Translations under genes and position numbers: made by a program
Notes under the pieces: generated by a model
Databases searched by the model: none
Seen by the model: the letters and a program-made list of their open reading frames with translations, nothing else
What the model was told of the DNA's origin: nothing
Sequence record: NC_041975.1
Reading direction: 5' to 3' (one strand)
Length of the DNA stretch: 64,000 bases
Part shown: piece after piece, positions 5,032 through 55,068 of the stretch
Layout: each line of letters begins with the position of its first letter
How positions within the stretch are numbered: position 1 is the first letter of the stretch

Positions 5032-5502
5032 ATGAGTGAAATCACGTTTAAAGACGCGCGGTATTACGACCTGATTACCAAAGAACAATTGCAGCCTGGA
5101 CACACCATTCTGTTGAGCCTCAAAGGGCAACCAGCGGGCGTCATGACCCCAGCAGTACAGTGGACTAAAGACAACCTGGAAAACGCGGTCGTGGTGTACG
5201 GTACGGTTGACGATCTGCAATCAATCCGTAAAGAGATCAGCAGTTGCGATCAACCGGTAGCTGTGGTCCTTACCGGCGGCTACCATGCAACGTATGAACT
5301 TACTCACTGGGCGCGGGAAAACCACGTAGTCGTGTTCCTGGCTTCAGATGCCGATGCACCGCGTCCACGTTATGCAGCACTGCTCGGTACCTGTCTGGTC
5401 CAGCTGACTTATGACCAGACTGGTCGGGTGAGCTCTGCTACCGCCATTCGTAATCAAGCAACCGCATCAGGCTGGGTGATCGACTTCACCGCTGACGCAT
5501 AA
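5032..5502 (+). CDS. Hypothetical protein (Rossmann-like alpha/beta pattern)
   Basis: ORF with AAGGG RBS downstream of the promoter motif. Confidence 0.7.
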   Translation: MSEITFKDARYYDLITKEQLQPGHTILLSLKGQPAGVMTPAVQWTKDNLENAVVVYGTVDDLQSIRKEISSCDQPVAVVLTGGYHATYELTHWARENHVVVFLASDADAPRPRYAALLGTCLVQLTYDQTGRVSSATAIRNQATASGWVIDFTADA

Positions 5503-5541
5503 TCCTTTATTCATCCAACCAATTTAACCTGAGGTAATACC

Positions 5542-6147
5542 ATGCAACTTCATCAATACGTCGCCCTCTTACTCGGTGTGGGTTTAATCACGATCATTCT
5601 CGTTATGCTGGTCGGCTGGCTCGTGCTTGAGAACCAACGCAAATACGCCGCATTCCAACGGGTGCGTTACGAAAACATGCTGCGCTATCGCCTGACCGAT
5701 TTCAGCAACCAGGTGACGGCAGATCTCTCCGCCATGTTCTTGCGCTATTTACTCTCCCCGCGGGTTGGTAGTACCGAGCGGGCGAGTGTGGAGGCAATAG
5801 CCGGTACCATCCAAGGCATGCTGCAAGCGATCGCTGCTCACCACAACCATGAGTTTAAAAGCTCAGAGGTTGGTGATACGTTACTGGGTCTGTTGATTAA
5901 AGAGGTTTCTTACGAAACACAGAGCGACCGGATCATCTTTACCCTGACACGTCCAGGTGCCACGAACCTCACTTATACCTTGACACATCCCGAAGCGTAC
6001 GGCGCGATGCTCTGCTGTGAGCTGGAAGACTATCGCATGCGTCTGCGTGACCGCGCAACCCTGCAGATCAAGCGTGAGCTCGATCAGGCACCGCAAACGT
6101 ATAAAGCCGTCTTCCCTAACTCGGAGCGGATTAATACCACTGCGTAA
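5542..6147 (+). CDS. N-terminally membrane-anchored hypothetical protein
   Basis: GAGGT RBS; N-terminal TM; architecture like 926 and 1465. Confidence 0.75.
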   Translation: MQLHQYVALLLGVGLITIILVMLVGWLVLENQRKYAAFQRVRYENMLRYRLTDFSNQVTADLSAMFLRYLLSPRVGSTERASVEAIAGTIQGMLQAIAAHHNHEFKSSEVGDTLLGLLIKEVSYETQSDRIIFTLTRPGATNLTYTLTHPEAYGAMLCCELEDYRMRLRDRATLQIKRELDQAPQTYKAVFPNSERINTTA

Positions 6148-24943: not shown

Positions 24944-26652
24944 TGTCATCATTAACCACCAATGAAGTTGTTGAGCATTTAGACCAGTACGTAATTGGAC
25001 AGGTAAATGCCAAACGGGCGATCGCATTGGCGTATCGTGAACGAAGCTTGAAAGCGGAGAACAGCGGAGAAGGCTGGCGTTACATCACCCCCTCTAACAT
25101 CATGATGGTCGGGCCATCAGGTAGCGGTAAGACGGAACTGGCTAAGCAGTTAGCGGACATGACCAACTCGCCTTTTGTGAAGTGCGAAATCACCGAGTTC
25201 ACACAAGTCGGTTACTACGGGCGTGACGTTAAAACCATTCTGACTGATCTGTTGAAAGAAGCCATTCGGATTGCTCCGGAGATCTGGCGGAAAGAAAACA
25301 AACCAAAACTCAGCAAAGCGAACCGTGACCTGCTGGCACTGATGCTAAAAGACCCGGAGACGTTGGATGCCTTTGCTAAAGCACTGAACATCACCACTGA
25401 TAAATGCACCGTGCCGTTTGTGGAAGAGAAACTCCTCAACGGCACCACCCTGCGTAAGCTCAATGTGCGTTATGGTTGGCGAGCGAATCCTTTACTGGCC
25501 GCCATCGATAAGCGGGCGGATAAACCGGAGAAGGGAGAAGAAGAGCCACCAATGGAAGATGCAGCGGCGTGGACACAGTGGTATGTCCGCACCAAGATGA
25601 ACTTTAGCAAGCTCGGGTATTCAGGCACCGAAGACAGTCTGGTGAAAGAAGCCGCTCGCGTGTTAGAAGCGATTCCTATTAAGGATAAGATGGAACCGGT
25701 GCTGATTGAGGTAATTGGCGAAACCCTTAATGAGAAACGCAAAAAGATCATCGCTGCCCGCGGTGCCAGTCAACCGAAACTGATTCGCCTGTTGCTGGAT
25801 GAGAAAGACTACAAAGCCCTGTGCCGTAAGCTACTGGAAACAATGGGTTCCCGACTGTGGATGAAGCTTGACACCATCATCGATATCGGTGATGCGCTGA
25901 ATCAAAGCAAGAACCCACCGCCGGACTTCATTGTTAAACTGGTTGAAGAACGCGGCATTGTCTTCATTGATGAGTTCGACAAGATCTTCCTCGACAGCCG
26001 GGGCGAGAACGTCGGTAACATGGGTGTAGTGCGTGACCTGATGCCTTACCTTGATGGGGTCGTGACTGAAGTCTCTACGGTCAATGAACGTGAACGGGGT
26101 GGTGGGTTATTTGGTGAACGGAACGAGAAGTACATCATCAATACCGCTAATATCCTCTGGATCGCATCAGGTGCGTTTCATCTCGCTAAGGTGAGTGATG
26201 TGCCCGCTGAGATCTTAGGACGTCTCCCTGTGCATGTGAAGCTCAATCGCTTGACTGCAGACGATCTGGAAAAGGTACTCATCAAACCCCACGGGTCGAT
26301 CATTGCGGGTGTCACGCTGCTGATGTCAGCGGAAGGAGCTGAGTTCGTTATTGATGCCGCTGCGATTCGTGCCATTGCTGATCTGGCCTATGAGTGCAAT
26401 ACCGTCGGTGAGGATACCGGGGCACGTCGTCTGAAAGGCGTCTGCTTCGAGTTGTTCCGCGATATGCTCTATGGCGCATCCAACCTATTACCTGACCAAA
26501 AGAAAGTGCACTTCACCGCAGAGCAAGTGATGGCTGAGCGTGAACGCATTCTGGCGACTGTTGAGCGCCGTAAAGAAAAACCCAAAGAAACCGACCCTGC
26601 TCAGCGCTTTGCAAAAGCCATGAAAGAGCTCGGGACTTTGGTTAACAATTAA
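24943..26652 (+). CDS. hslU: HslU-like AAA+ ATPase/unfoldase
   Basis: YVIGQ..AKRAIA, GPSGSGKTE, FTQVGYYGRDV, IVFIDEFDKI, ILWIASGAF, GRLP, GARRL. Confidence 0.85.
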   Translation: MSSLTTNEVVEHLDQYVIGQVNAKRAIALAYRERSLKAENSGEGWRYITPSNIMMVGPSGSGKTELAKQLADMTNSPFVKCEITEFTQVGYYGRDVKTILTDLLKEAIRIAPEIWRKENKPKLSKANRDLLALMLKDPETLDAFAKALNITTDKCTVPFVEEKLLNGTTLRKLNVRYGWRANPLLAAIDKRADKPEKGEEEPPMEDAAAWTQWYVRTKMNFSKLGYSGTEDSLVKEAARVLEAIPIKDKMEPVLIEVIGETLNEKRKKIIAARGASQPKLIRLLLDEKDYKALCRKLLETMGSRLWMKLDTIIDIGDALNQSKNPPPDFIVKLVEERGIVFIDEFDKIFLDSRGENVGNMGVVRDLMPYLDGVVTEVSTVNERERGGGLFGERNEKYIINTANILWIASGAFHLAKVSDVPAEILGRLPVHVKLNRLTADDLEKVLIKPHGSIIAGVTLLMSAEGAEFVIDAAAIRAIADLAYECNTVGEDTGARRLKGVCFELFRDMLYGASNLLPDQKKVHFTAEQVMAERERILATVERRKEKPKETDPAQRFAKAMKELGTLVNN

Positions 26653-46951: not shown

Positions 46952-47025
46952 TGAACACCCGTTTTGGTAATTTATTACGTAGTTGATCAATTATAAGAGA
47001 GATATTGTTTATTCGAGGGTGTTTC

Positions 47026-48546
47026 ATGGACAAGTTACCAAGTACCGCACTGCCAAAGGTATCAATGGTTTTATACACCGATGGCGGTTGTCGTCAAAAC
47101 ATCGGAGGCTGGGGAATACATGGTTATTCCTGGCTGGTTGAAGACGATGACAAAAAGAAAAAGAAAAAGCCGGCGCGTGACGTTCCGTCAACGACTGGCT
47201 ACATTGTAAAAGACGATCCGAAACTCGACAGTCGTGAAGTGGTCAGGCCCCACGAAGTGATTGAAGGGTTCGGAGGGATTTTACCTAACACCACGAATAA
47301 CGTTGCGGAACTCACAGCAACTATTAATGGTATTGACTTAGCACTGCAGCAGAACACAGAAAAGCTCCTCGTCATCTCCGATTCCAAATATGTCGGCGAC
47401 AATGCAAAGAACCAATTGCATCGTTGGATGAAAGCCGGCTGGAAGAAAGCGGATGGCGGGGATGTTGCCAACAAAGAGCTGTGGGAAACCCTCAGCAGCA
47501 AACTTGATGAGCTGAAATACCGCGGTATCTCGTTTGACATCGAATGGTTGAAAGGGCATGCGGGTCACCGTGGAAATCAGTTCGCTGACTACATGGCAAC
47601 CCGTGGTGTCTTTAAAGGCCGTGTTGGTGACGCTACCCCGTATTATCAGATCCAGGATGCCGGTGAGTACGATAAGTACAAAACTGAACGTCCGCGCTTT
47701 GTCACGCACTCGCGCTGGTACTTCACGTTACAGACTGAAAAGTTGATGAACAAGAATGAACAGGGCTTGTACGAGTATTGCTTTGGCCACCCAAGTAAAG
47801 GGGACGCTGATCAGCAGTACTTAGGCAAAGCGTTAGCCGATACCGCCTTTAGCGTGGTGTGGTTGAAAGCACCTGAAGAGTGTTTGGATCTGGTTTATTC
47901 ACGCACCAAAGAGATCGCTACCGACGTTTACGGTAACGCCTTCATTGGTCGCTTGGATAACATTTACAACTCATTCATTCACAAAGAGATCATGGACTAC
48001 GGCGGGTCGTTATTGCAACGTGCGAATAAGTACAACAATGACATCACCAACTGTACCGATGCTCAAGTGGTGCGTGAGTGTAACCCGCCAGGTATCTCTT
48101 ACCGGGCACTGTCGAATTTAGGACAGCTTAGTAAGATCCTGAATGAATTTGTCAGCGACAGTTTACCTGCGACAACCAGGGTGGTAGAGATTACTGACAA
48201 AATCTACCAGACCGTGAAAGGTAAGAAAGAAGATAAGCTGGCATTGCTCGGTTCGATTCGTCAAACCGACAAAGCGCTCAAGTTCGATGTACCGTGTGAT
48301 GTACTCGACAAAGCGATCTCCGTCGAAGTTACAGCCACGCTTGGATTGACCCTACCCAACCGTAATACGTTAAACGGTCTTACGGAACTCAATCCAAAGG
48401 TATACCTGTTCTTGACAAAAGAGTCCGACATTGCATTTCGCTACGGATCGATTGTGGTATGCGATGAAGGGTATTGCATCATGGCCAACGTATACGCTGA
48501 CCTGCGTACGCTGTCAAAAAAGGATCTGGAGCGTTGCGGGCAGTAA
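47026..48546 (+). CDS. rnhA: Ribonuclease HI (long phiKZ-type)
   Basis: LYTDGGC, TNNVAEL, VISDSKYV, VANKELWE, WLKGHAGHRGNQFADYMA. Confidence 0.92.
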   Translation: MDKLPSTALPKVSMVLYTDGGCRQNIGGWGIHGYSWLVEDDDKKKKKKPARDVPSTTGYIVKDDPKLDSREVVRPHEVIEGFGGILPNTTNNVAELTATINGIDLALQQNTEKLLVISDSKYVGDNAKNQLHRWMKAGWKKADGGDVANKELWETLSSKLDELKYRGISFDIEWLKGHAGHRGNQFADYMATRGVFKGRVGDATPYYQIQDAGEYDKYKTERPRFVTHSRWYFTLQTEKLMNKNEQGLYEYCFGHPSKGDADQQYLGKALADTAFSVVWLKAPEECLDLVYSRTKEIATDVYGNAFIGRLDNIYNSFIHKEIMDYGGSLLQRANKYNNDITNCTDAQVVRECNPPGISYRALSNLGQLSKILNEFVSDSLPATTRVVEITDKIYQTVKGKKEDKLALLGSIRQTDKALKFDVPCDVLDKAISVEVTATLGLTLPNRNTLNGLTELNPKVYLFLTKESDIAFRYGSIVVCDEGYCIMANVYADLRTLSKKDLERCGQ

Positions 48547-49760: not shown

Positions 49761-49841
49761 ATGTACTCCGTGAGATAAAAGTAATCTGTTACATAAGATG
49801 ACTTATTATGAAGGTATTATTAATTAAAAGGACCGCACACA

Positions 49842-51227
49842 ATGTTGTCATTCGGTGAATTTGTTGAGAAGTCACGCCCTATTCGACCTTTCTTGAATAT
49901 CGGCGCGGGCTTTGATATCCCAACCGGTAGCTATCGTTTCGGTAAGCACGGTGAATCTATTCTTAATGGTGGTCTGGCACCATTCATTGCGATTGTTGGT
50001 AAAGGCAACACCTTTAAAACAGCGATCGGTTGTTTCATGATGACCCGCGTGCTGGAGCGCTACAATAACTCTAACGGCCTGCACTACGACACCGAGTGTA
50101 CGTTCAGTGCTGATCGTCTTACCAGTCTTACCAGTCGTCTGGGTCCGAATGCTGCTGCAGAGTGGCTGGCCAACGAACGTATCTACCTGACTGATGACTC
50201 TATCATTAAAGGTAACCAGTGGTTTAAGAAGTCGGTGCAGGAATACTCCGAAGCGAAGAAGAAAGCCAAAATGGGCACGCTGCCGTTTGTGGATAAAGAT
50301 GGGAATTTGATCCCGTATCCATACCCGACAGTCAACTTTGGCGATTCCATGTCTGAGATGAAATTCGACGATCTGGAAAAGAACTACGCCAAGATGGAAA
50401 TCGGCCAGGGTGAAATGCAAACGGAAGCCATGCGTGTGTCGAACGCCAAACGCATGTTAATCGAAAAGACCCAGGGTTACGCCAACGCCGGCGGCATGTA
50501 TGTCATCATGACAGCGCACTTAGGTAAAGAGCTGAACATGGATGGTAAACCACAAGAGAAGAAAACCACCTTTATGAAACAAGGTGACAAAATCTCTAAG
50601 GTGCCTTCACAGATCCTCTCTCTGCCAAACAACGCCTGGGAGATCTCTACCGGTACGGTGTTGATTGATAAGAACACCAAAGAGTGGATGTACCCGAAAC
50701 AGGGTCGCAATGACGTGGATACCAACGGTAACCCGGACATGATCACTCTGGTGGCGAAGAACCTGCGCGGGAAGAATGGCCCGTCTGGCGTGCCGTGGGA
50801 ATTCGTCATGTCACAGTCTGAAGGTCTGCTGCCGTCCCTGACAGAGTTCCATTACATTAAGAACAACGGCCGTTATGGCCTGGGTGGCAATGACCGTAAT
50901 TATTATGTTGAATTGTGCCCAGATATCAAGCTGCAGCGCACCACCGTGCGTGATCGCATCGACGACAACCCTGAGTTACGTCGGGCATTAGAGATCACCA
51001 TGGAGATGTGTCAGATGCGTTTCCTGTGGCACACCCGCGATCCAAAGTACAACATGACTCCTCAGGAACTGCGTGAAGGCCTGGAGAAGAAAGGGTACAA
51101 ATGGGATCAGCTGCTCAACACCCGTGGGTTCTGGACGTTTGAAGAAGACAACCATCCATTACCATTCTTAAGCACAATGGATCTACTCCGCATGTATCAT
51201 GATGAGTATCGCCCATACTGGCTGTAA
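49842..51227 (+). CDS. uvsX: UvsX/RecA-like recombinase (phiKZ-type)
   Basis: FDIPTG, AIVGKGNTFKT Walker A, HYDTE, DSMSE, GPSG. Confidence 0.85.
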   Translation: MLSFGEFVEKSRPIRPFLNIGAGFDIPTGSYRFGKHGESILNGGLAPFIAIVGKGNTFKTAIGCFMMTRVLERYNNSNGLHYDTECTFSADRLTSLTSRLGPNAAAEWLANERIYLTDDSIIKGNQWFKKSVQEYSEAKKKAKMGTLPFVDKDGNLIPYPYPTVNFGDSMSEMKFDDLEKNYAKMEIGQGEMQTEAMRVSNAKRMLIEKTQGYANAGGMYVIMTAHLGKELNMDGKPQEKKTTFMKQGDKISKVPSQILSLPNNAWEISTGTVLIDKNTKEWMYPKQGRNDVDTNGNPDMITLVAKNLRGKNGPSGVPWEFVMSQSEGLLPSLTEFHYIKNNGRYGLGGNDRNYYVELCPDIKLQRTTVRDRIDDNPELRRALEITMEMCQMRFLWHTRDPKYNMTPQELREGLEKKGYKWDQLLNTRGFWTFEEDNHPLPFLSTMDLLRMYHDEYRPYWL

Positions 51228-51307
51228 GTGTACCCACTGTGGGAGAGGGATAACCCTCTCCTTCTTATACCGTCAGTAGAGGGAAATAAGCTAATAGGAA
51301 GCAGTAT

Positions 51308-51727
51308 ATGCTTAACAAAGAAATACGCATTGTCGTTGCGTCGACTAAAGGTTTCAACGACGCAGAGCGTTTAAAACTGACTATTGACGGCCTCCTGGAA
51401 GATATCTACTACCTCAACGAAGGGGTAGGTGATGAGGACGAGGAGTTGATCACTGATGCCAAGATAGTTTTCATCACCAATGGCGAACACAAAACAGCGG
51501 CTGAGTTGCTGCCTGGTGTGTTGGGTGATCGGAACATCGACATCGAAGTGATCAAGGTTGATTGGTCAAAAGGTAAGAAAGCGTTTTTTGATAACTGCGC
51601 TGTATTGGGTGCGAAGTCGACCCACGGCGTCATTTTTACGGACAGCAAAGATGACGGGATGCAGACACTGCTGAAAGCATGTCTCGATGCCGGCTCACGC
51701 GTTCGTACTTATAGCTCTGCTATTTGA
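51308..51727 (+). CDS. SLOG/YspA-like (DUF2493-type) domain protein, divergent
   Basis: IVVASTKGFND, VIKVDWSKGKKAFFDN, VIFTD...GMQTLL; aligns by eye with the C-terminal domain of 52218. Confidence 0.6.
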   Translation: MLNKEIRIVVASTKGFNDAERLKLTIDGLLEDIYYLNEGVGDEDEELITDAKIVFITNGEHKTAAELLPGVLGDRNIDIEVIKVDWSKGKKAFFDNCAVLGAKSTHGVIFTDSKDDGMQTLLKACLDAGSRVRTYSSAI

Positions 51728-51741
51728 GAAAGGTAACCCCC

Positions 51742-52188
51742 ATGATAGCCTCAGAAGCTCACGTTAGTATACTTGACGTTAATGTCACCCACGTTATATG
51801 CACAGTTAATTGCGAAGGGCATATGGGTCGTGGCATAGCCTTGTATCTGCGTAAGTGTATTCCGGGGCTATATGAGCGGTATAAACACCTGTGCAGTTTA
51901 GGGATCATCACGGTAGACAAACTCTGGATCTACCCATCACACCCCCGTCAGATTCTCTGCTTTCCAACCAAAGATAAAACCTGGGAAGACAGCAAGCTTG
52001 AATGGATCGAAGCCAATCTCATAAAGCTTCGTGACAACTACAAAACAAAAGGCATTGTCTCTGTGGCGATGCCTCCTCTTGGATGTGGAAACGGTAACCT
52101 AAAGTGGGATGAGGTGCGGAGCCTCATTTATGCCATCTTGGGTGATTGTGACCTTGAAGTCCACATCTGTTTAGGTAAACCGAAGTGA
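51742..52188 (+). CDS. Macrodomain protein, DarG-like ADP-ribosylhydrolase
   Basis: TVNCEGHMGRGIA, CFPTK...SKLEWI, VAMPPLGCGNGNLKWDEV. Confidence 0.88.
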   Translation: MIASEAHVSILDVNVTHVICTVNCEGHMGRGIALYLRKCIPGLYERYKHLCSLGIITVDKLWIYPSHPRQILCFPTKDKTWEDSKLEWIEANLIKLRDNYKTKGIVSVAMPPLGCGNGNLKWDEVRSLIYAILGDCDLEVHICLGKPK

Positions 52189-52217
52189 GGGAAACACCCT
52201 GAATAGGAGCCAGTATT

Positions 52218-53099
52218 ATGTCTGATAACGCACACGTTTTACCCGATCCACGCGAAGATGGCAAGACGCACATCAACGTCTATAGCCGTGGCGCTTCCTG
52301 GTTAGGGCAGCAACTTTCTAATATGTCCTACTACGACTTCGCACATCCACGCTACGGTGTGTTCGCCTCGTTGGAGGGCTTCTGGTATTGGTTGTCTACG
52401 GGCAAGCAACACGAGGAGTTACGGAAGCTTGCCGGGGTCAAAGCGAAAATGACCGGCCGGGAGTTCGAGACGATCCCAAATGAAAACTTTGAAGAAGAGT
52501 TCAAAGAAGCCATGCGTCTGCGTCTGGAGCAACACCCGATCATCGCCAATGCCCTGGCTGAATCGTTACTGCCGTTAAAGCACTACTATTGTTACGGCGG
52601 GAAAGTGGTCGACTTGTATGACCGTCACAAATGGCAGATGGACTTCTACGAGGAGTGGCGTAAAGCCAACGCCCCCGAAGACACCACGTTGGTGCTGTTG
52701 ATCTCTGGCTCGCGTAAAGAGAAAGACTACGACGCCTTTAAGCACATCGTGATGACCTACCTGCAGCCGTATATCGACAAGATAAAGGACACGTACAAAA
52801 TCACCCTGCTTTCGGGGCTCGCCTGGGAAGGTCCCGATGACATGGCAATTCGTCTGTGTCGGGAAGAAGGCTTCATGTTGATTGGTCTGCCGGCTAAGTG
52901 GAAAGAGCAAGGTAAAGCCGCGGGCATGATCCGCAATGGTGCCATGGGGCGGTTGTGTAACAAGGCTCTGGTGTTCTGGGATGGCGAATCACCGGGGACA
53001 AAAGGGATGATTGATTACCTGAAGAAAAATACTATAGACCATCTTGTGTATTTACACGGTAAACATGAACCTGACTGGAAAGCCCCGGAGACATCATGA
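52218..53099 (+). CDS. NADAR-like N-terminal domain fused to a SLOG/YspA domain
   Basis: LSNM...F...G.FASLEGFW...AK..GR...LEQHP; C-terminal ISGSR, G.A.GPD, W...GKAAGMIRN, FWDGESPGTKGMI. Confidence 0.65.
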   Translation: MSDNAHVLPDPREDGKTHINVYSRGASWLGQQLSNMSYYDFAHPRYGVFASLEGFWYWLSTGKQHEELRKLAGVKAKMTGREFETIPNENFEEEFKEAMRLRLEQHPIIANALAESLLPLKHYYCYGGKVVDLYDRHKWQMDFYEEWRKANAPEDTTLVLLISGSRKEKDYDAFKHIVMTYLQPYIDKIKDTYKITLLSGLAWEGPDDMAIRLCREEGFMLIGLPAKWKEQGKAAGMIRNGAMGRLCNKALVFWDGESPGTKGMIDYLKKNTIDHLVYLHGKHEPDWKAPETS

Positions 53100-53770
53100 C
53101 CCCAGCACGCGAACAGACCCAGCAATTTGTGATCGAGGCTATTGCTGAGATTCTCCCCGGTTCTAAGAACCGGGATATCTATATCGACTTCTTCTCGCGG
53201 TTGAGCGATGAGGCGTTTGATGCCCTGATGCAGCGGATGGATGAAGACCAGGAGATCTTCCCCTTCTACCATCCGAACTTTACCGGCACGGTAATTGATG
53301 TTGAACGTGTGATCAAGTTAATTGAAAAGCACGGCGACACCATCATGGAACAGCTCTGGGATATCGACCCGGAAACCGGACTGCAGTACCTGACTCCATT
53401 GAAGTATCCGGTGCTGTTACTTCCGCTGCGTATTCAGCAGCAGAAGCTGCAGAAGAAGATGTCGATTCCAAAAGACAACAACCACATCGACGATCTGACT
53501 AACCAGCCCACTACCGAATCCAAAGGAGCTTCCTTGTCTTACCCGGAAGTGCAGATCATCTATGCCATGGGTGGTGACAAGATTCTGGAAGAGACCATGA
53601 AGGTTCGTGGTGGTGATGAGAAGGCGTTTCGTGATTACAATAACGAAATCATTGCAAGCGGCGGTGTCACCATTGGCGCAATCAGCAGCAGCAAGACAAA
53701 GGTGAAGTCCACCAAAACCGTGCAAGTGATTCTTGAGGCCATGCACCTGAGCAACAACCTGGCCAGTTAA
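53096..53770 (+). CDS. Virion RNA polymerase beta subunit, C-terminal fragment (phiKZ gp149-like)
   Basis: IDDLTNQPT.ESKGASLSYPEVQ...AMG...EETMKVRGGD parallels RpoB SLVTQQPLGG...GEME..AL..YG...EMLTVKSDD. Confidence 0.8.
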   Translation: MTPAREQTQQFVIEAIAEILPGSKNRDIYIDFFSRLSDEAFDALMQRMDEDQEIFPFYHPNFTGTVIDVERVIKLIEKHGDTIMEQLWDIDPETGLQYLTPLKYPVLLLPLRIQQQKLQKKMSIPKDNNHIDDLTNQPTTESKGASLSYPEVQIIYAMGGDKILEETMKVRGGDEKAFRDYNNEIIASGGVTIGAISSSKTKVKSTKTVQVILEAMHLSNNLAS

Positions 53771-53779
53771 GGATGCAAC

Positions 53780-54340
53780 ATGAGTAGCTTGATAAACAAC
53801 CTGACCGGTAAAAACAAAGTTGAGTTCAGCCCGATTGATCTTGACAGTGAAGTCGAGCGGGTTGTCTCTGAGTATGTCGGTACATACTTACGCAACCGTA
53901 TCTTTCTGGCAGCACAATCGAAGATACCGGTGAATGAAGACCCAGGGTATCTGCAGATTGTAAACTTCTTGGCTTTGGTGAACATGGAGTTCAACCATAT
54001 GCGCATGTGGTCTACGTCCGACATGACCAATACCGTCTGGCCGCAGATCGTTGAAGATGAGTATGTGTTGCGCTTTGTGTTTAAAGGCACTACCCATGTC
54101 AGTGTGCGGTGCTTTGATGGCGATGTGCCCTTTCAGAAACTGGTCGACCATGTGGCCGGTTCTCTAAGCTGCATGTCACACGGCGGAAATGAAATCATCG
54201 CAGCAGCGTTAACCCAGGTCCTGCCACGCAATGACGAACTGGTTGAGCTCTTTACCGGTAACCAATGGTCGTTGTTCATTTATTACCTAACGCGCATTAA
54301 CATCATTGAGATTGTGACCAATTCGGGAGGTAGTGTATAA
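53780..54340 (+). CDS. Conserved hypothetical protein
   Basis: AAGGA RBS; core-region context. Confidence 0.7.
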   Translation: MSSLINNLTGKNKVEFSPIDLDSEVERVVSEYVGTYLRNRIFLAAQSKIPVNEDPGYLQIVNFLALVNMEFNHMRMWSTSDMTNTVWPQIVEDEYVLRFVFKGTTHVSVRCFDGDVPFQKLVDHVAGSLSCMSHGGNEIIAAALTQVLPRNDELVELFTGNQWSLFIYYLTRINIIEIVTNSGGSV

Positions 54341-55068
54341 TGGTGGGCGGAGATCGTATTGGGTGTTACGTCCCCCTGGATGCTTTGTTGGATACCCGTA
54401 TCGGGGTCATTGACCAAGTGGCCGGGGAAGTAGGATTGGAGTTGGTTAAGTCATGGTACCATACTCGCACGGCTGATCGCTTTGACCGAAAAGGCACACC
54501 GTTAACGCAGACGGCATATCAGGCAGCCTGGGCCGCCCGCAGTGAAGAGACCTTAAAGCGTACACGCATGACCTTTGTGCCGATGTACCTGATGAACCTG
54601 ATCAGTCGCTTTAACACCTCACACGGCATGCCGATCATGGCGGCGACCTACAACATCACGGTGAACACGTATCCGTATCGGTTATCCGATGAGCGCAAAG
54701 AGCAACTGCAGAAGATCATCGAAACGTACACGTCGGGCATTGCTGAAATCACCATTGACTATATCAGTCCAGCAGACCTGACTGTCGAGTACGTGAAGGC
54801 GAACTACTCCGTGTGCATCATGTATGAGTTTGATGAGTGGTTGATGTTGCATAAAGACGAGTTCAGTCAGACCCAGATGCCCGGGACCGTAATCCTGGCA
54901 CCTAAGTTGTATCTGGCGGATGTGGGGGAAGATGTGATTAAGCGGGCAGAGCAGACCGATGGCTTTGCAGGCCTGAGCCTGGCACTCTGTGCATTGGTGA
55001 CAGTGGTGTTCCTGGATGTAAGGTTGTTCTCTTATGTCACAGACACACCACCGAATCTGGATGAGTGA
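54340..55068 (+). CDS. Conserved hypothetical protein (phiKZ-like core)
   Basis: TAATG coupling; YVPLDALLDTR motif. Confidence 0.7.
   Translation: MVGGDRIGCYVPLDALLDTRIGVIDQVAGEVGLELVKSWYHTRTADRFDRKGTPLTQTAYQAAWAARSEETLKRTRMTFVPMYLMNLISRFNTSHGMPIMAATYNITVNTYPYRLSDERKEQLQKIIETYTSGIAEITIDYISPADLTVEYVKANYSVCIMYEFDEWLMLHKDEFSQTQMPGTVILAPKLYLADVGEDVIKRAEQTDGFAGLSLALCALVTVVFLDVRLFSYVTDTPPNLDE

Follow-up and report, generated by a model that had tools for sequence, protein, structure and literature searches.

A macrodomain, NADAR-like and SLOG gene cassette of Erwinia phage Special G as a candidate eraser of ADP-ribose from phage DNA

The window analyzed here is a stretch of 64,000 nucleotides from sequence record NC_041975.1, one strand, and all positions given below refer to the whole of it. 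Over 49800-54400, its identity to Erwinia phage vB_EamM_Special G (KU886222 / NC_041975) is 100%, against 97.8-99.4% for other Agricanvirus phages (RAY, Simmy50, Deimos-Minion, Ea35-70 and others) and 84% for Erwinia phage AH06. Agricanvirus phages are nucleus-forming jumbo phages (chimalliviruses), of which RAY is a studied member (PMC10299810). Between the recombinase gene uvsX and a gene for a subunit of the virion RNA polymerase (vRNAP), three genes, g153, g154 and g155, are found; their products are an acidic SLOG-like protein, a macrodomain protein, and a two-domain protein in which a NADAR-like domain precedes a SLOG domain. These genes may constitute one counter-defence cassette, which would remove the ADP-ribose placed by host DarT on the bases of phage DNA inside the phage nucleus; belief and doubt in this proposal are evenly balanced. 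The features of the locus are the following.

49842..51227, + strand: uvsX (Special G gp152), a UvsX/RecA-like recombinase (phrog_97, 1.8e-56; named UvsX in the records of both Special G and RAY)
51241..51262, + strand: terminator-like hairpin with a 9-bp G+C-rich stem, a 4-nt loop and a short T-rich tail (terminator scan; RNA fold z = -2.0)
51308..51727, + strand: g153 (gp153), 139 amino acids (aa), an acidic, motif-degenerate SLOG-like Rossmannoid protein (phrog_289, hhalign and hmmsearch)
51742..52188, + strand: g154 (gp154), 148 aa, a stand-alone DarG-type macrodomain and AdfM homologue (Pfam, NCBIfam, PADLOC and PDB matches)
52218..53099, + strand: g155 (gp155), 293 aa, a protein of two domains (phrog_11222, 8e-214)
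52242..52673, + strand: N-terminal domain of g155, about residues 9-152, probably a divergent member of the NADAR superfamily of gp30.3/AdfN type (phrog_652, 2e-35; profiles)
52683..53072, + strand: C-terminal domain of g155, about residues 156-285, a YAcAr/DprA-like SLOG domain that keeps the canonical motifs (PF10686; phrog_289; Foldseek)
53096..53770, + strand: gene for a vRNAP beta-subunit fragment (phrog_3233, 1.7e-99; RAY annotation 'putative vRNAP beta subunit 2')

The five genes lie in the order uvsX, g153, g154, g155 and vRNAP beta-subunit gene, all on the + strand, and the segment 51308-53099 begins exactly with g153 and ends exactly with the g155 stop. An earlier reading of this DNA from its letters (the sequence-only reading) had placed three consecutive co-oriented genes between uvsX and the virion RNA polymerase subunit and had assigned to them, in turn, a SLOG fold, a macrodomain, and a NADAR-like plus SLOG fold. 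The layout and its limits proved exact, and the folds were right for all three genes, with the qualifications that the NADAR likeness is remote and that g153 has lost the SLOG motifs. Translation of g154 most likely begins with the ATG at 51742, the start annotated in RAY, rather than with the TTG at 51724 that opens the listed open reading frame (ORF). The spacer between uvsX and g153 is 80 bp long and contains the hairpin; because this putative terminator stands directly 3' of uvsX, g153-g155 and the vRNAP subunit gene may begin a separate transcription unit. The start of the vRNAP beta-subunit gene (53096) overlaps the stop of g155 (53099). In a scan for sigma-70 promoters, sites were no more frequent than in shuffled sequence, a result that is uninformative here because the phage carries its own RNA polymerases.

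The g154 protein matched Pfam Macro (1.2e-09), PADLOC DarG (9.8e-41) and NCBIfam DarG (1.4e-37), compared with 0.021 for the NCBIfam ADP-ribose-binding family. The NCBIfam DarG match covers the macro part only (model positions 8-145 of 338), and the missing DarT-binding domain keeps its score, 129.7, under the equivalog cut-off (250); g154 is a stand-alone protein of 148 aa without the C-terminal DarT-binding domain of DarG. In the PDB, the DarG macrodomains 5m3i (1.1e-22) and 5m31 (8.5e-21) were matched, and human TARG1 ranks behind them.

AdfM macrodomains, named in a 2026 paper, have been found in about half of the chimalliviruses (PMC13309987). In that work, PhiKZ gp104 (AdfM) strips thymidine-linked ADP-ribose from DNA and neutralises DarT2, rescuing its toxicity; the AdfM proteins of PhiKZ, PhiPA3 and Erwinia phage Asesino enter the phage nucleus, and an anti-DarT2 function is experimentally supported for all three (PMC13309987). 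The active-site residues are N22/K80 in Thermus aquaticus DarG2 and N23/K78 in PhiKZ AdfM (PMC13309987). Residues N23 and K77 of g154 fall in both active-site columns, which are invariant in an alignment with the PhiKZ-type, Asesino and phiEco32 proteins. Judged by the DarG-like matches and the conserved active-site Asn and Lys, g154 is assigned to the AdfM-type enzymes as a distant member.

Like the AdfM proteins PhiKZ gp104, PhiPA3 gp108, Asesino gp217 and Goslar gp83 (PMC13309987), g154 is a stand-alone chimallivirus macrodomain of about 150 aa whose nearest bacterial counterpart is DarG2, which keeps both active-site residues and lacks the DarT-binding domain. It differs from them in sequence, with no more than 31-32% identity to the PhiKZ-type and Asesino proteins; the figure for the macrodomain of podophage phiEco32, the closest outside the chimalliviruses, is 42%. 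It differs also in position, since g154 sits elsewhere in the genome, within the SLOG/NADAR-like cassette, and is fused to those domains in sister phages, whereas the PhiKZ-type and Asesino AdfM genes have no cassette partners within +/-4 kb.

The deposited annotation of g154, 'putative phosphatase', would agree with another role, in which the cassette serves RNA repair or the processing of RNA ends or NAD caps, as an Appr-1''-p phosphatase would. Iyer, Burroughs, Anantharaman and Aravind 2022 (PMC9503650) tie NADAR and Macro domains to RNA-repair contexts, and Proteus phage Pm5461 groups RNA ligase genes with a DprA-like gene and a macro-like ORF over a few kb. Near the cassette in the window, however, genes for an RNA ligase, a kinase-phosphatase or Tpt1/KptA are absent, and the macrodomain belongs to the DarG/TARG1 type and has the catalytic Lys. 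In RAY, moreover, RtcB is cytoplasmic whereas gp153, the orthologue of g155, is nuclear (PMC10299810). A function in RNA processing is judged very improbable.

The second enzyme candidate of the cassette is g155. Its AlphaFold2 (AF2) model has a mean predicted local distance difference test (pLDDT) score of 92.5, and its best match in BFVD is the 'DprA-like protein' (gp153) of RAY, with 99% identity. A full scan of 1.84 billion representatives with whole g155 yielded 5212 proteins when E<=0.001 was required, and 1011 under the stricter limit of E<=1e-10. Stand-alone proteins of about 150 aa are frequent among the best 150 matches, and the conservation and domain counts given below were taken over 149 representative g155 relatives. 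The N-terminal domain (N-domain) falls in phrog_652 / phrog_11222, an unnamed family of very large size. Its matches in the BFVD search are unnamed phage proteins, and a further protein search with the N-domain profile listed close family members only, without Pfam labels.

Comparison of profiles brought out a more distant kinship. With two independent N-domain profiles, the two top-ranked of 177,635 PDB sequences were YbiA of Escherichia coli (2b3w) and the NADAR protein 8bau; their E-values are weak (0.006-0.19), and the alignments extend over about 100 residues with four motifs in common. The gp30.3 gene of the T4-like Proteus phage Pm5461, which matches PF08010 at 4.7e-41 and NADAR at 4e-05, served as the reference for that branch, and hhalign aligned the N-domain family with its product at 95.4% probability, E 1.8e-8 and 30% identity over 94 columns. 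Among the stand-alone N-domain members, 4 of 52 weakly match PF08010 (Phage_30_3, the T4 gp30.3 family) and one matches NADAR. PF08010 is also matched by two of the 149 g155 relatives; Pfam scans of selected multi-domain relatives did not recover the two PF08010-matching members.

Conserved residues and secondary structure are consistent with the same kinship. Residue E53 aligns with the catalytic Glu (S-x-E motif) of 8bau and gp30.3 and is conserved in 148/149 relatives. H122, likewise conserved in 148/149, stands at the start of the penultimate strand (last beta hairpin) in an L-x-H context resembling that of gp30.3, and K77 is conserved in 139/149. A His that replaces Glu/Asp in the last strand is a hallmark of the phage gp30.3 NADARs (PMC11543638, PMC11125620). 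In the AF2 model, five helices (52-60, 66-70, 73-80, 91-105 and 107-115) lie between a 3-stranded and a 2-stranded sheet (strands 18-20, 41-43, 47-49, 123-126 and 129-132), and this order, as seen in the two-domain model only, agrees with the published description of the NADAR fold.

Several observations weigh against a NADAR identity. No Pfam family, PF08010 and PF08719 included, was detected in the N-domain of g155 itself, which is too divergent for Pfam, and H122 is located outside the confidently aligned hhalign segment. The phosphate-binding Lys at position Glu+7 is essential in DarT1-linked NADARs; g155 has S60 at this position, and Lys is present in only 22/148 relatives, while a basic residue (K or R) occurs three positions past it in 68/149. 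A Foldseek search with the whole two-domain model gave no NADAR entry in the PDB top 50, a list taken up by SLOG matches.

Taken together, the N-domain of g155 is most likely a remote relative of NADAR, nearest to the phage gp30.3 (AdfN) branch. With AdfN / T4 gp30.3 (PF08010; PMC11825919, PMC11125620) it has in common the motifs LSNF, SxEG and AK..G, the catalytic Glu and, in a part aligned without confidence, a His where other NADARs carry Glu/Asp. It differs in that it forms its own family, does not conserve Lys at Glu+7 and is fused to SLOG. AdfN and other phage NADARs undo guanine ADP-ribosylation and thereby counter DarTG1 (PMC11825919). On its homology to AdfN (PMC11825919), the NADAR-like domain could plausibly reverse guanine ADP-ribosylation, yet it is divergent.

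The C-terminal domain (C-domain) of g155 belongs to the SLOG superfamily. It matches phrog_289 at 1.1e-20 and PF10686 (Pfam YAcAr, a SLOG family) at 1.3e-4, under the gathering cut-off; among the relatives, PF10686 is found in 59/149, with E-values down to 1e-14, and PF02481 (DprA) in 27/149. The canonical motifs, namely the G-S-R loop after strand 1, S-G-x-A-x-G-x-D and R-N, are kept in conserved columns. In BFVD, nearly all named matches of the C-domain are 'YspA cpYpsA-related SLOG' or DUF2493 proteins. When the g155 model was compared with the PDB by Foldseek, the top structures were DprA 3uqz/4ljk, the cores of the Streptococcus pneumoniae and Helicobacter pylori proteins that bind single-stranded DNA (ssDNA), at prob 1.00, followed by ShosA; ThsA (ranks 30 and 41) and YpsA-type SLOG proteins came lower. 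Both the fold and the SLOG loop motifs are thus common to DprA and the C-domain, and the fold is common also to YpsA (2nx2) and ThsA (6lhx/8btp). The difference from DprA lies in the SAM and winged-helix domains, which g155 does not have, and in the Pfam family, which is YAcAr.

The likeness to DprA would also suit a different account, in which the main task of g155 is to mediate recombination together with UvsX in the manner of DprA, the N-domain serves as an accessory without catalysis, and the macrodomain is an unrelated AdfM gene. In its favour, DprA is the best structural match, PF02481 is present in part of the relatives as counted above, uvsX adjoins the cassette in 21 phage records, and the RAY protein is nuclear and annotated as 'DprA-like'. 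Of DprA, however, g155 has the Rossmann-like core alone, and YAcAr fits the domain better than DprA in Pfam. The near-invariant Glu/His pair of the N-domain is typical of an enzyme, and independent functions would leave the fusion of Macro to the N-domain in relatives unexplained. Such a mediator role for g155 is rather improbable, though less so than a function in RNA processing.

The first gene of the cassette, g153, has no Pfam match, and BLASTP detects no similarity between g153 and g155, so that their relation is visible only with profiles. The g153 protein matches phrog_289, the same phrog as the SLOG domain of g155, at 1.6e-6; the alignment of the g153 family with the g155-type SLOG by hhalign gives 97% probability and E 1.2e-10 over 120 columns; and the relation appears in hmmsearch at 1.5e-4 for g153 and at 1e-4 to 5e-6 in 6/6 clade phages. 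A precomputed PF10686 (YAcAr) label is carried by 2/15 g153 homologues. Within the GSR, SGxAxGxD and RN motifs, g153 carries other residues in place of the first-loop Gly/Arg, the second-motif Asp and the R-N Arg, and these replacements are themselves invariant within its family. The isoelectric point is 4.8, versus 8.5 for the SLOG domain of g155. The gene is known from 21 phage records only, always in the same slot. The AF2 model (pLDDT 66) has the beta-alpha x5 order; its Foldseek matches are generic Rossmann-like folds with YpsA at rank 13, a result that, coming from a low-confidence model, weighs against the assignment but does not decide it. The profile comparisons indicate that g153 is an acidic SLOG relative restricted to the cassette, in which the canonical SLOG motifs have been lost.

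An identity of g153 as a HAD phosphatase, raised by a profile search of the PDB (best matches E 0.008-0.02), was rejected because the match covers part of the domain, the N-terminal HAD catalytic motif is absent and the SLOG match is far stronger. The g153 protein is 100% identical in 16/16 Agricanvirus records, and the surrounding 4.6 kb of DNA differs by up to 2.2%. Structure comparison with AlphaFold and Foldseek, which the sequence-only reading had proposed as a check of its folds, thus bore out the SLOG domain of g155; it returned no NADAR within the top 50 for whole g155 and generic matches for g153.

The uvsX-vRNAP slot of related phages contains the same domains in several fused forms. 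In pEa_SNUABM_48, a homologue of g153 is followed by one 429-aa Macro-Ndomain-SLOG protein, and in Proteus phage 10 by a Macro-SLOG protein that lacks the N-domain. In Salmonella phage SA002, a Macro-Ndomain protein precedes an ORF with a macrodomain remnant, N-domain and SLOG, while AH06 shows the Special G arrangement plus two extra small genes. Among the 149 g155 relatives, a Macro domain is present in 4 and DUF4326 in 39. Metagenomic relatives include the orders Macro-DUF4326-Ndomain-SLOG and DUF4326-Macro-Ndomain-SLOG, and also Ndomain-BRCT and pyrimidine-dimer-glycosylase-Ndomain-SLOG proteins. Because the same slot in related phages holds the parts fused as one protein, the macrodomain, the NADAR-like domain and SLOG are considered to act as one unit whose grouping, on the comparison of gene arrangements, is not due to chance. 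The proposal of a single module made in the sequence-only reading agrees with these fusions and domain counts.

Adjacency to uvsX is a weaker argument. The sequence-only reading had held that placement next to the recombinase fits protection of ssDNA, and the adjacency is indeed found in 21 phage records; these all belong to the Special G clade, and because the arrangement is clade-specific and the macrodomain gene lies elsewhere in PhiKZ-like phages and Asesino, it carries little weight. The comparison of synteny across chimalliviruses gave a similarly divided result, with the cassette or its fusions at the same slot in the relatives of Special G and the macrodomain gene alone within 4 kb in PhiKZ-like phages and Asesino. 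In phiEco32, a macrodomain gene and a SLOG gene stand one gene apart.

Some of these loci show further peculiarities. In SA002 (MN445183; locus L007, 2934-4810), the cassette occupies two ORFs and the N-domain is present twice, a layout that looks like one partial tandem duplication inside a formerly fused gene. Both additional genes of AH06 (MZ501268; locus L001, 5395-5742 and 6627-6911) are inserted into the cassette; one is an ORF of 115 aa that matches no family, the other encodes a phrog_625 protein of 94 aa annotated 'RNA binding protein'. In a metagenomic relative of 683 aa (P0040), a GIY-YIG nuclease and an I-TevI-type DNA-binding domain separate the macrodomain from the N-domain-SLOG part, as if a homing endonuclease had inserted into a fused cassette gene or a gene call had run across one. 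In phiEco32 (EU330206; locus L004, 2995-4491), the stand-alone SLOG protein is annotated as 'putative GTP-binding protein', and the intervening gene encodes an ECF-type sigma factor. In Pm5461 (NC_028762; locus L009), the three domain types are scattered, not clustered: the DprA-like SLOG gene, the macrodomain-like ORF and the gp30.3 gene lie at 2305-2868, 5316-5756 and 25129-25584, and the macro-like ORF, which matches the macro profile at 4.7e-17, is annotated as several short hypothetical genes.

The substrate of the cassette may be sought either in DNA or among soluble molecules. A fusion of RAY gp153 with green fluorescent protein co-localises with DNA in the phage nucleus (PMC10299810). 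Since this protein is found with phage DNA, the SLOG domain is nearest to DprA, and N-domain relatives are fused to BRCT and glycosylase domains, DNA is preferred here. The authors who first described the association of SLOG, Macro and NADAR in phages (PMC9503650) favoured soluble ADP-ribose (ADPr) derivatives, with SLOG sensing or cutting the adenine-ribose bond and Macro and NADAR acting on other bonds. The cassette would then degrade or bind ADPr-derived immune molecules, such as cyclic ADPR isomers or ADPr-1''-phosphate. The SLOG of ThsA binds gcADPR, and ThsA is among the Foldseek matches of g155, though by a weak similarity (ranks 30 and 41); DUF4326, described in the same paper as a predicted phosphatase for ADPr breakdown products (PMC9503650), is fused in 39/149 relatives; and two SLOG copies per cassette would suit ligand binding. 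The macrodomain, however, is specifically DarG-like (1.4e-37 versus 0.021) with homologues that act on DNA, the nearest structures of the g155 SLOG are DprA and not ThsA, relatives are fused to DNA-repair domains, and the canonical SLOG loop residues have been lost in g153. The g155 orthologue of RAY is nuclear with DNA, and Thoeris is unmentioned in a survey of 317 E. amylovora genomes (PMC13480210). Action on soluble ligands is judged unlikely, and the suggestion in the sequence-only reading that the module senses or sequesters ADPR-derived signals received no direct support.

The preferred reading, removal of DarT-borne ADP-ribose from phage DNA, can be outlined as follows. The DarG2-like macrodomain of g154 would hydrolyse thymidine-linked ADP-ribose on ssDNA, an activity shown for its homologues and expected here from the active site. 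The N-domain of g155, with its conserved Glu/His pair, would most likely cleave a second base-ADP-ribose N-glycosidic bond, for which guanine provides the precedent. The DprA-like SLOG domain would most likely keep this hydrolase, and in relatives also the fused macrodomain, on ssDNA, the presumed site of both DarT marking and UvsX action. The g153 protein, more speculatively, would act as a non-catalytic partner of the g155 SLOG domain. The sequence-only reading had proposed that one module reverses both types of DNA ADP-ribosylation: the thymidine part agrees with the AdfM homologues (PMC13309987) and the retention of N23/K77, while we infer the guanine part, in which the Lys is not kept in place.

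Carried further, the reading would make g155 a second, hitherto undescribed anti-DarT factor of nucleus-forming phages, a SLOG-tethered gp30.3-like hydrolase beside AdfM, so that thymine- and guanine-type (or other base) adducts would be erased in the nucleus, with g153 as a dedicated partner or regulator. This extended form is possible, though held with more doubt than belief. Opposed to removal of DarT marks, besides the published preference for soluble ADPr derivatives, are the report of one study that T4 gp30.3 gave no protection from DarT1 outside infection (PMC11125620) and the presence of DarTG in E. amylovora genomes as a rare system (PMC13480210).

The function of the macrodomain (2026) and the viral association of SLOG, Macro, NADAR and DUF4326 (2022) are already published; the novelty of the current work is modest for this reason, and the cassette is a fresh instance of a known counter-defence. 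The viral SLOG-Macro-NADAR-DUF4326 sets predicted in PMC9503650 resemble the cassette in their domains, in their occurrence in jumbo phages, and in being linked by fusion and neighbourhood. That study is computational and general and favours soluble ADPr, whereas RAY localisation, the DarG-type macrodomain and the DNA-repair fusions favour DNA adducts here. In the text searched there is no description of the degenerate SLOG g153. The fusion series at one conserved slot is new, as are the probable assignment of the g155 N-domain family to the gp30.3 branch of the NADARs and the recognition of g153 as a degenerate SLOG limited to the cassette.

Elsewhere in the window, 47005-48546 encodes a 513-aa protein in which RNase H is confined to residues 93-202 (PF00075, 3.8e-25; phrog_3265 'ribonuclease'); the other approximately 300 residues are without a family match.

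With this cassette, the Agricanvirus group, including the fire-blight phages RAY, Special G and their relatives, would join the chimalliviruses that back the phage nucleus with enzymatic DNA de-ADP-ribosylation. Two proteins labelled 'hypothetical' and 'DprA-like' receive a testable identity, and the very large unnamed family phrog_652 / phrog_11222 would be tied to the NADAR/gp30.3 hydrolases. The likely behaviour of Macro, NADAR-like and SLOG domains as one unit bears on the role of viral SLOG domains. If the extended form of the reading is true, the unnamed N-domain family, which comprises more than 1000 representative clusters and is frequent among large phages, would constitute a major branch of DNA de-ADP-ribosylases that has so far been overlooked.

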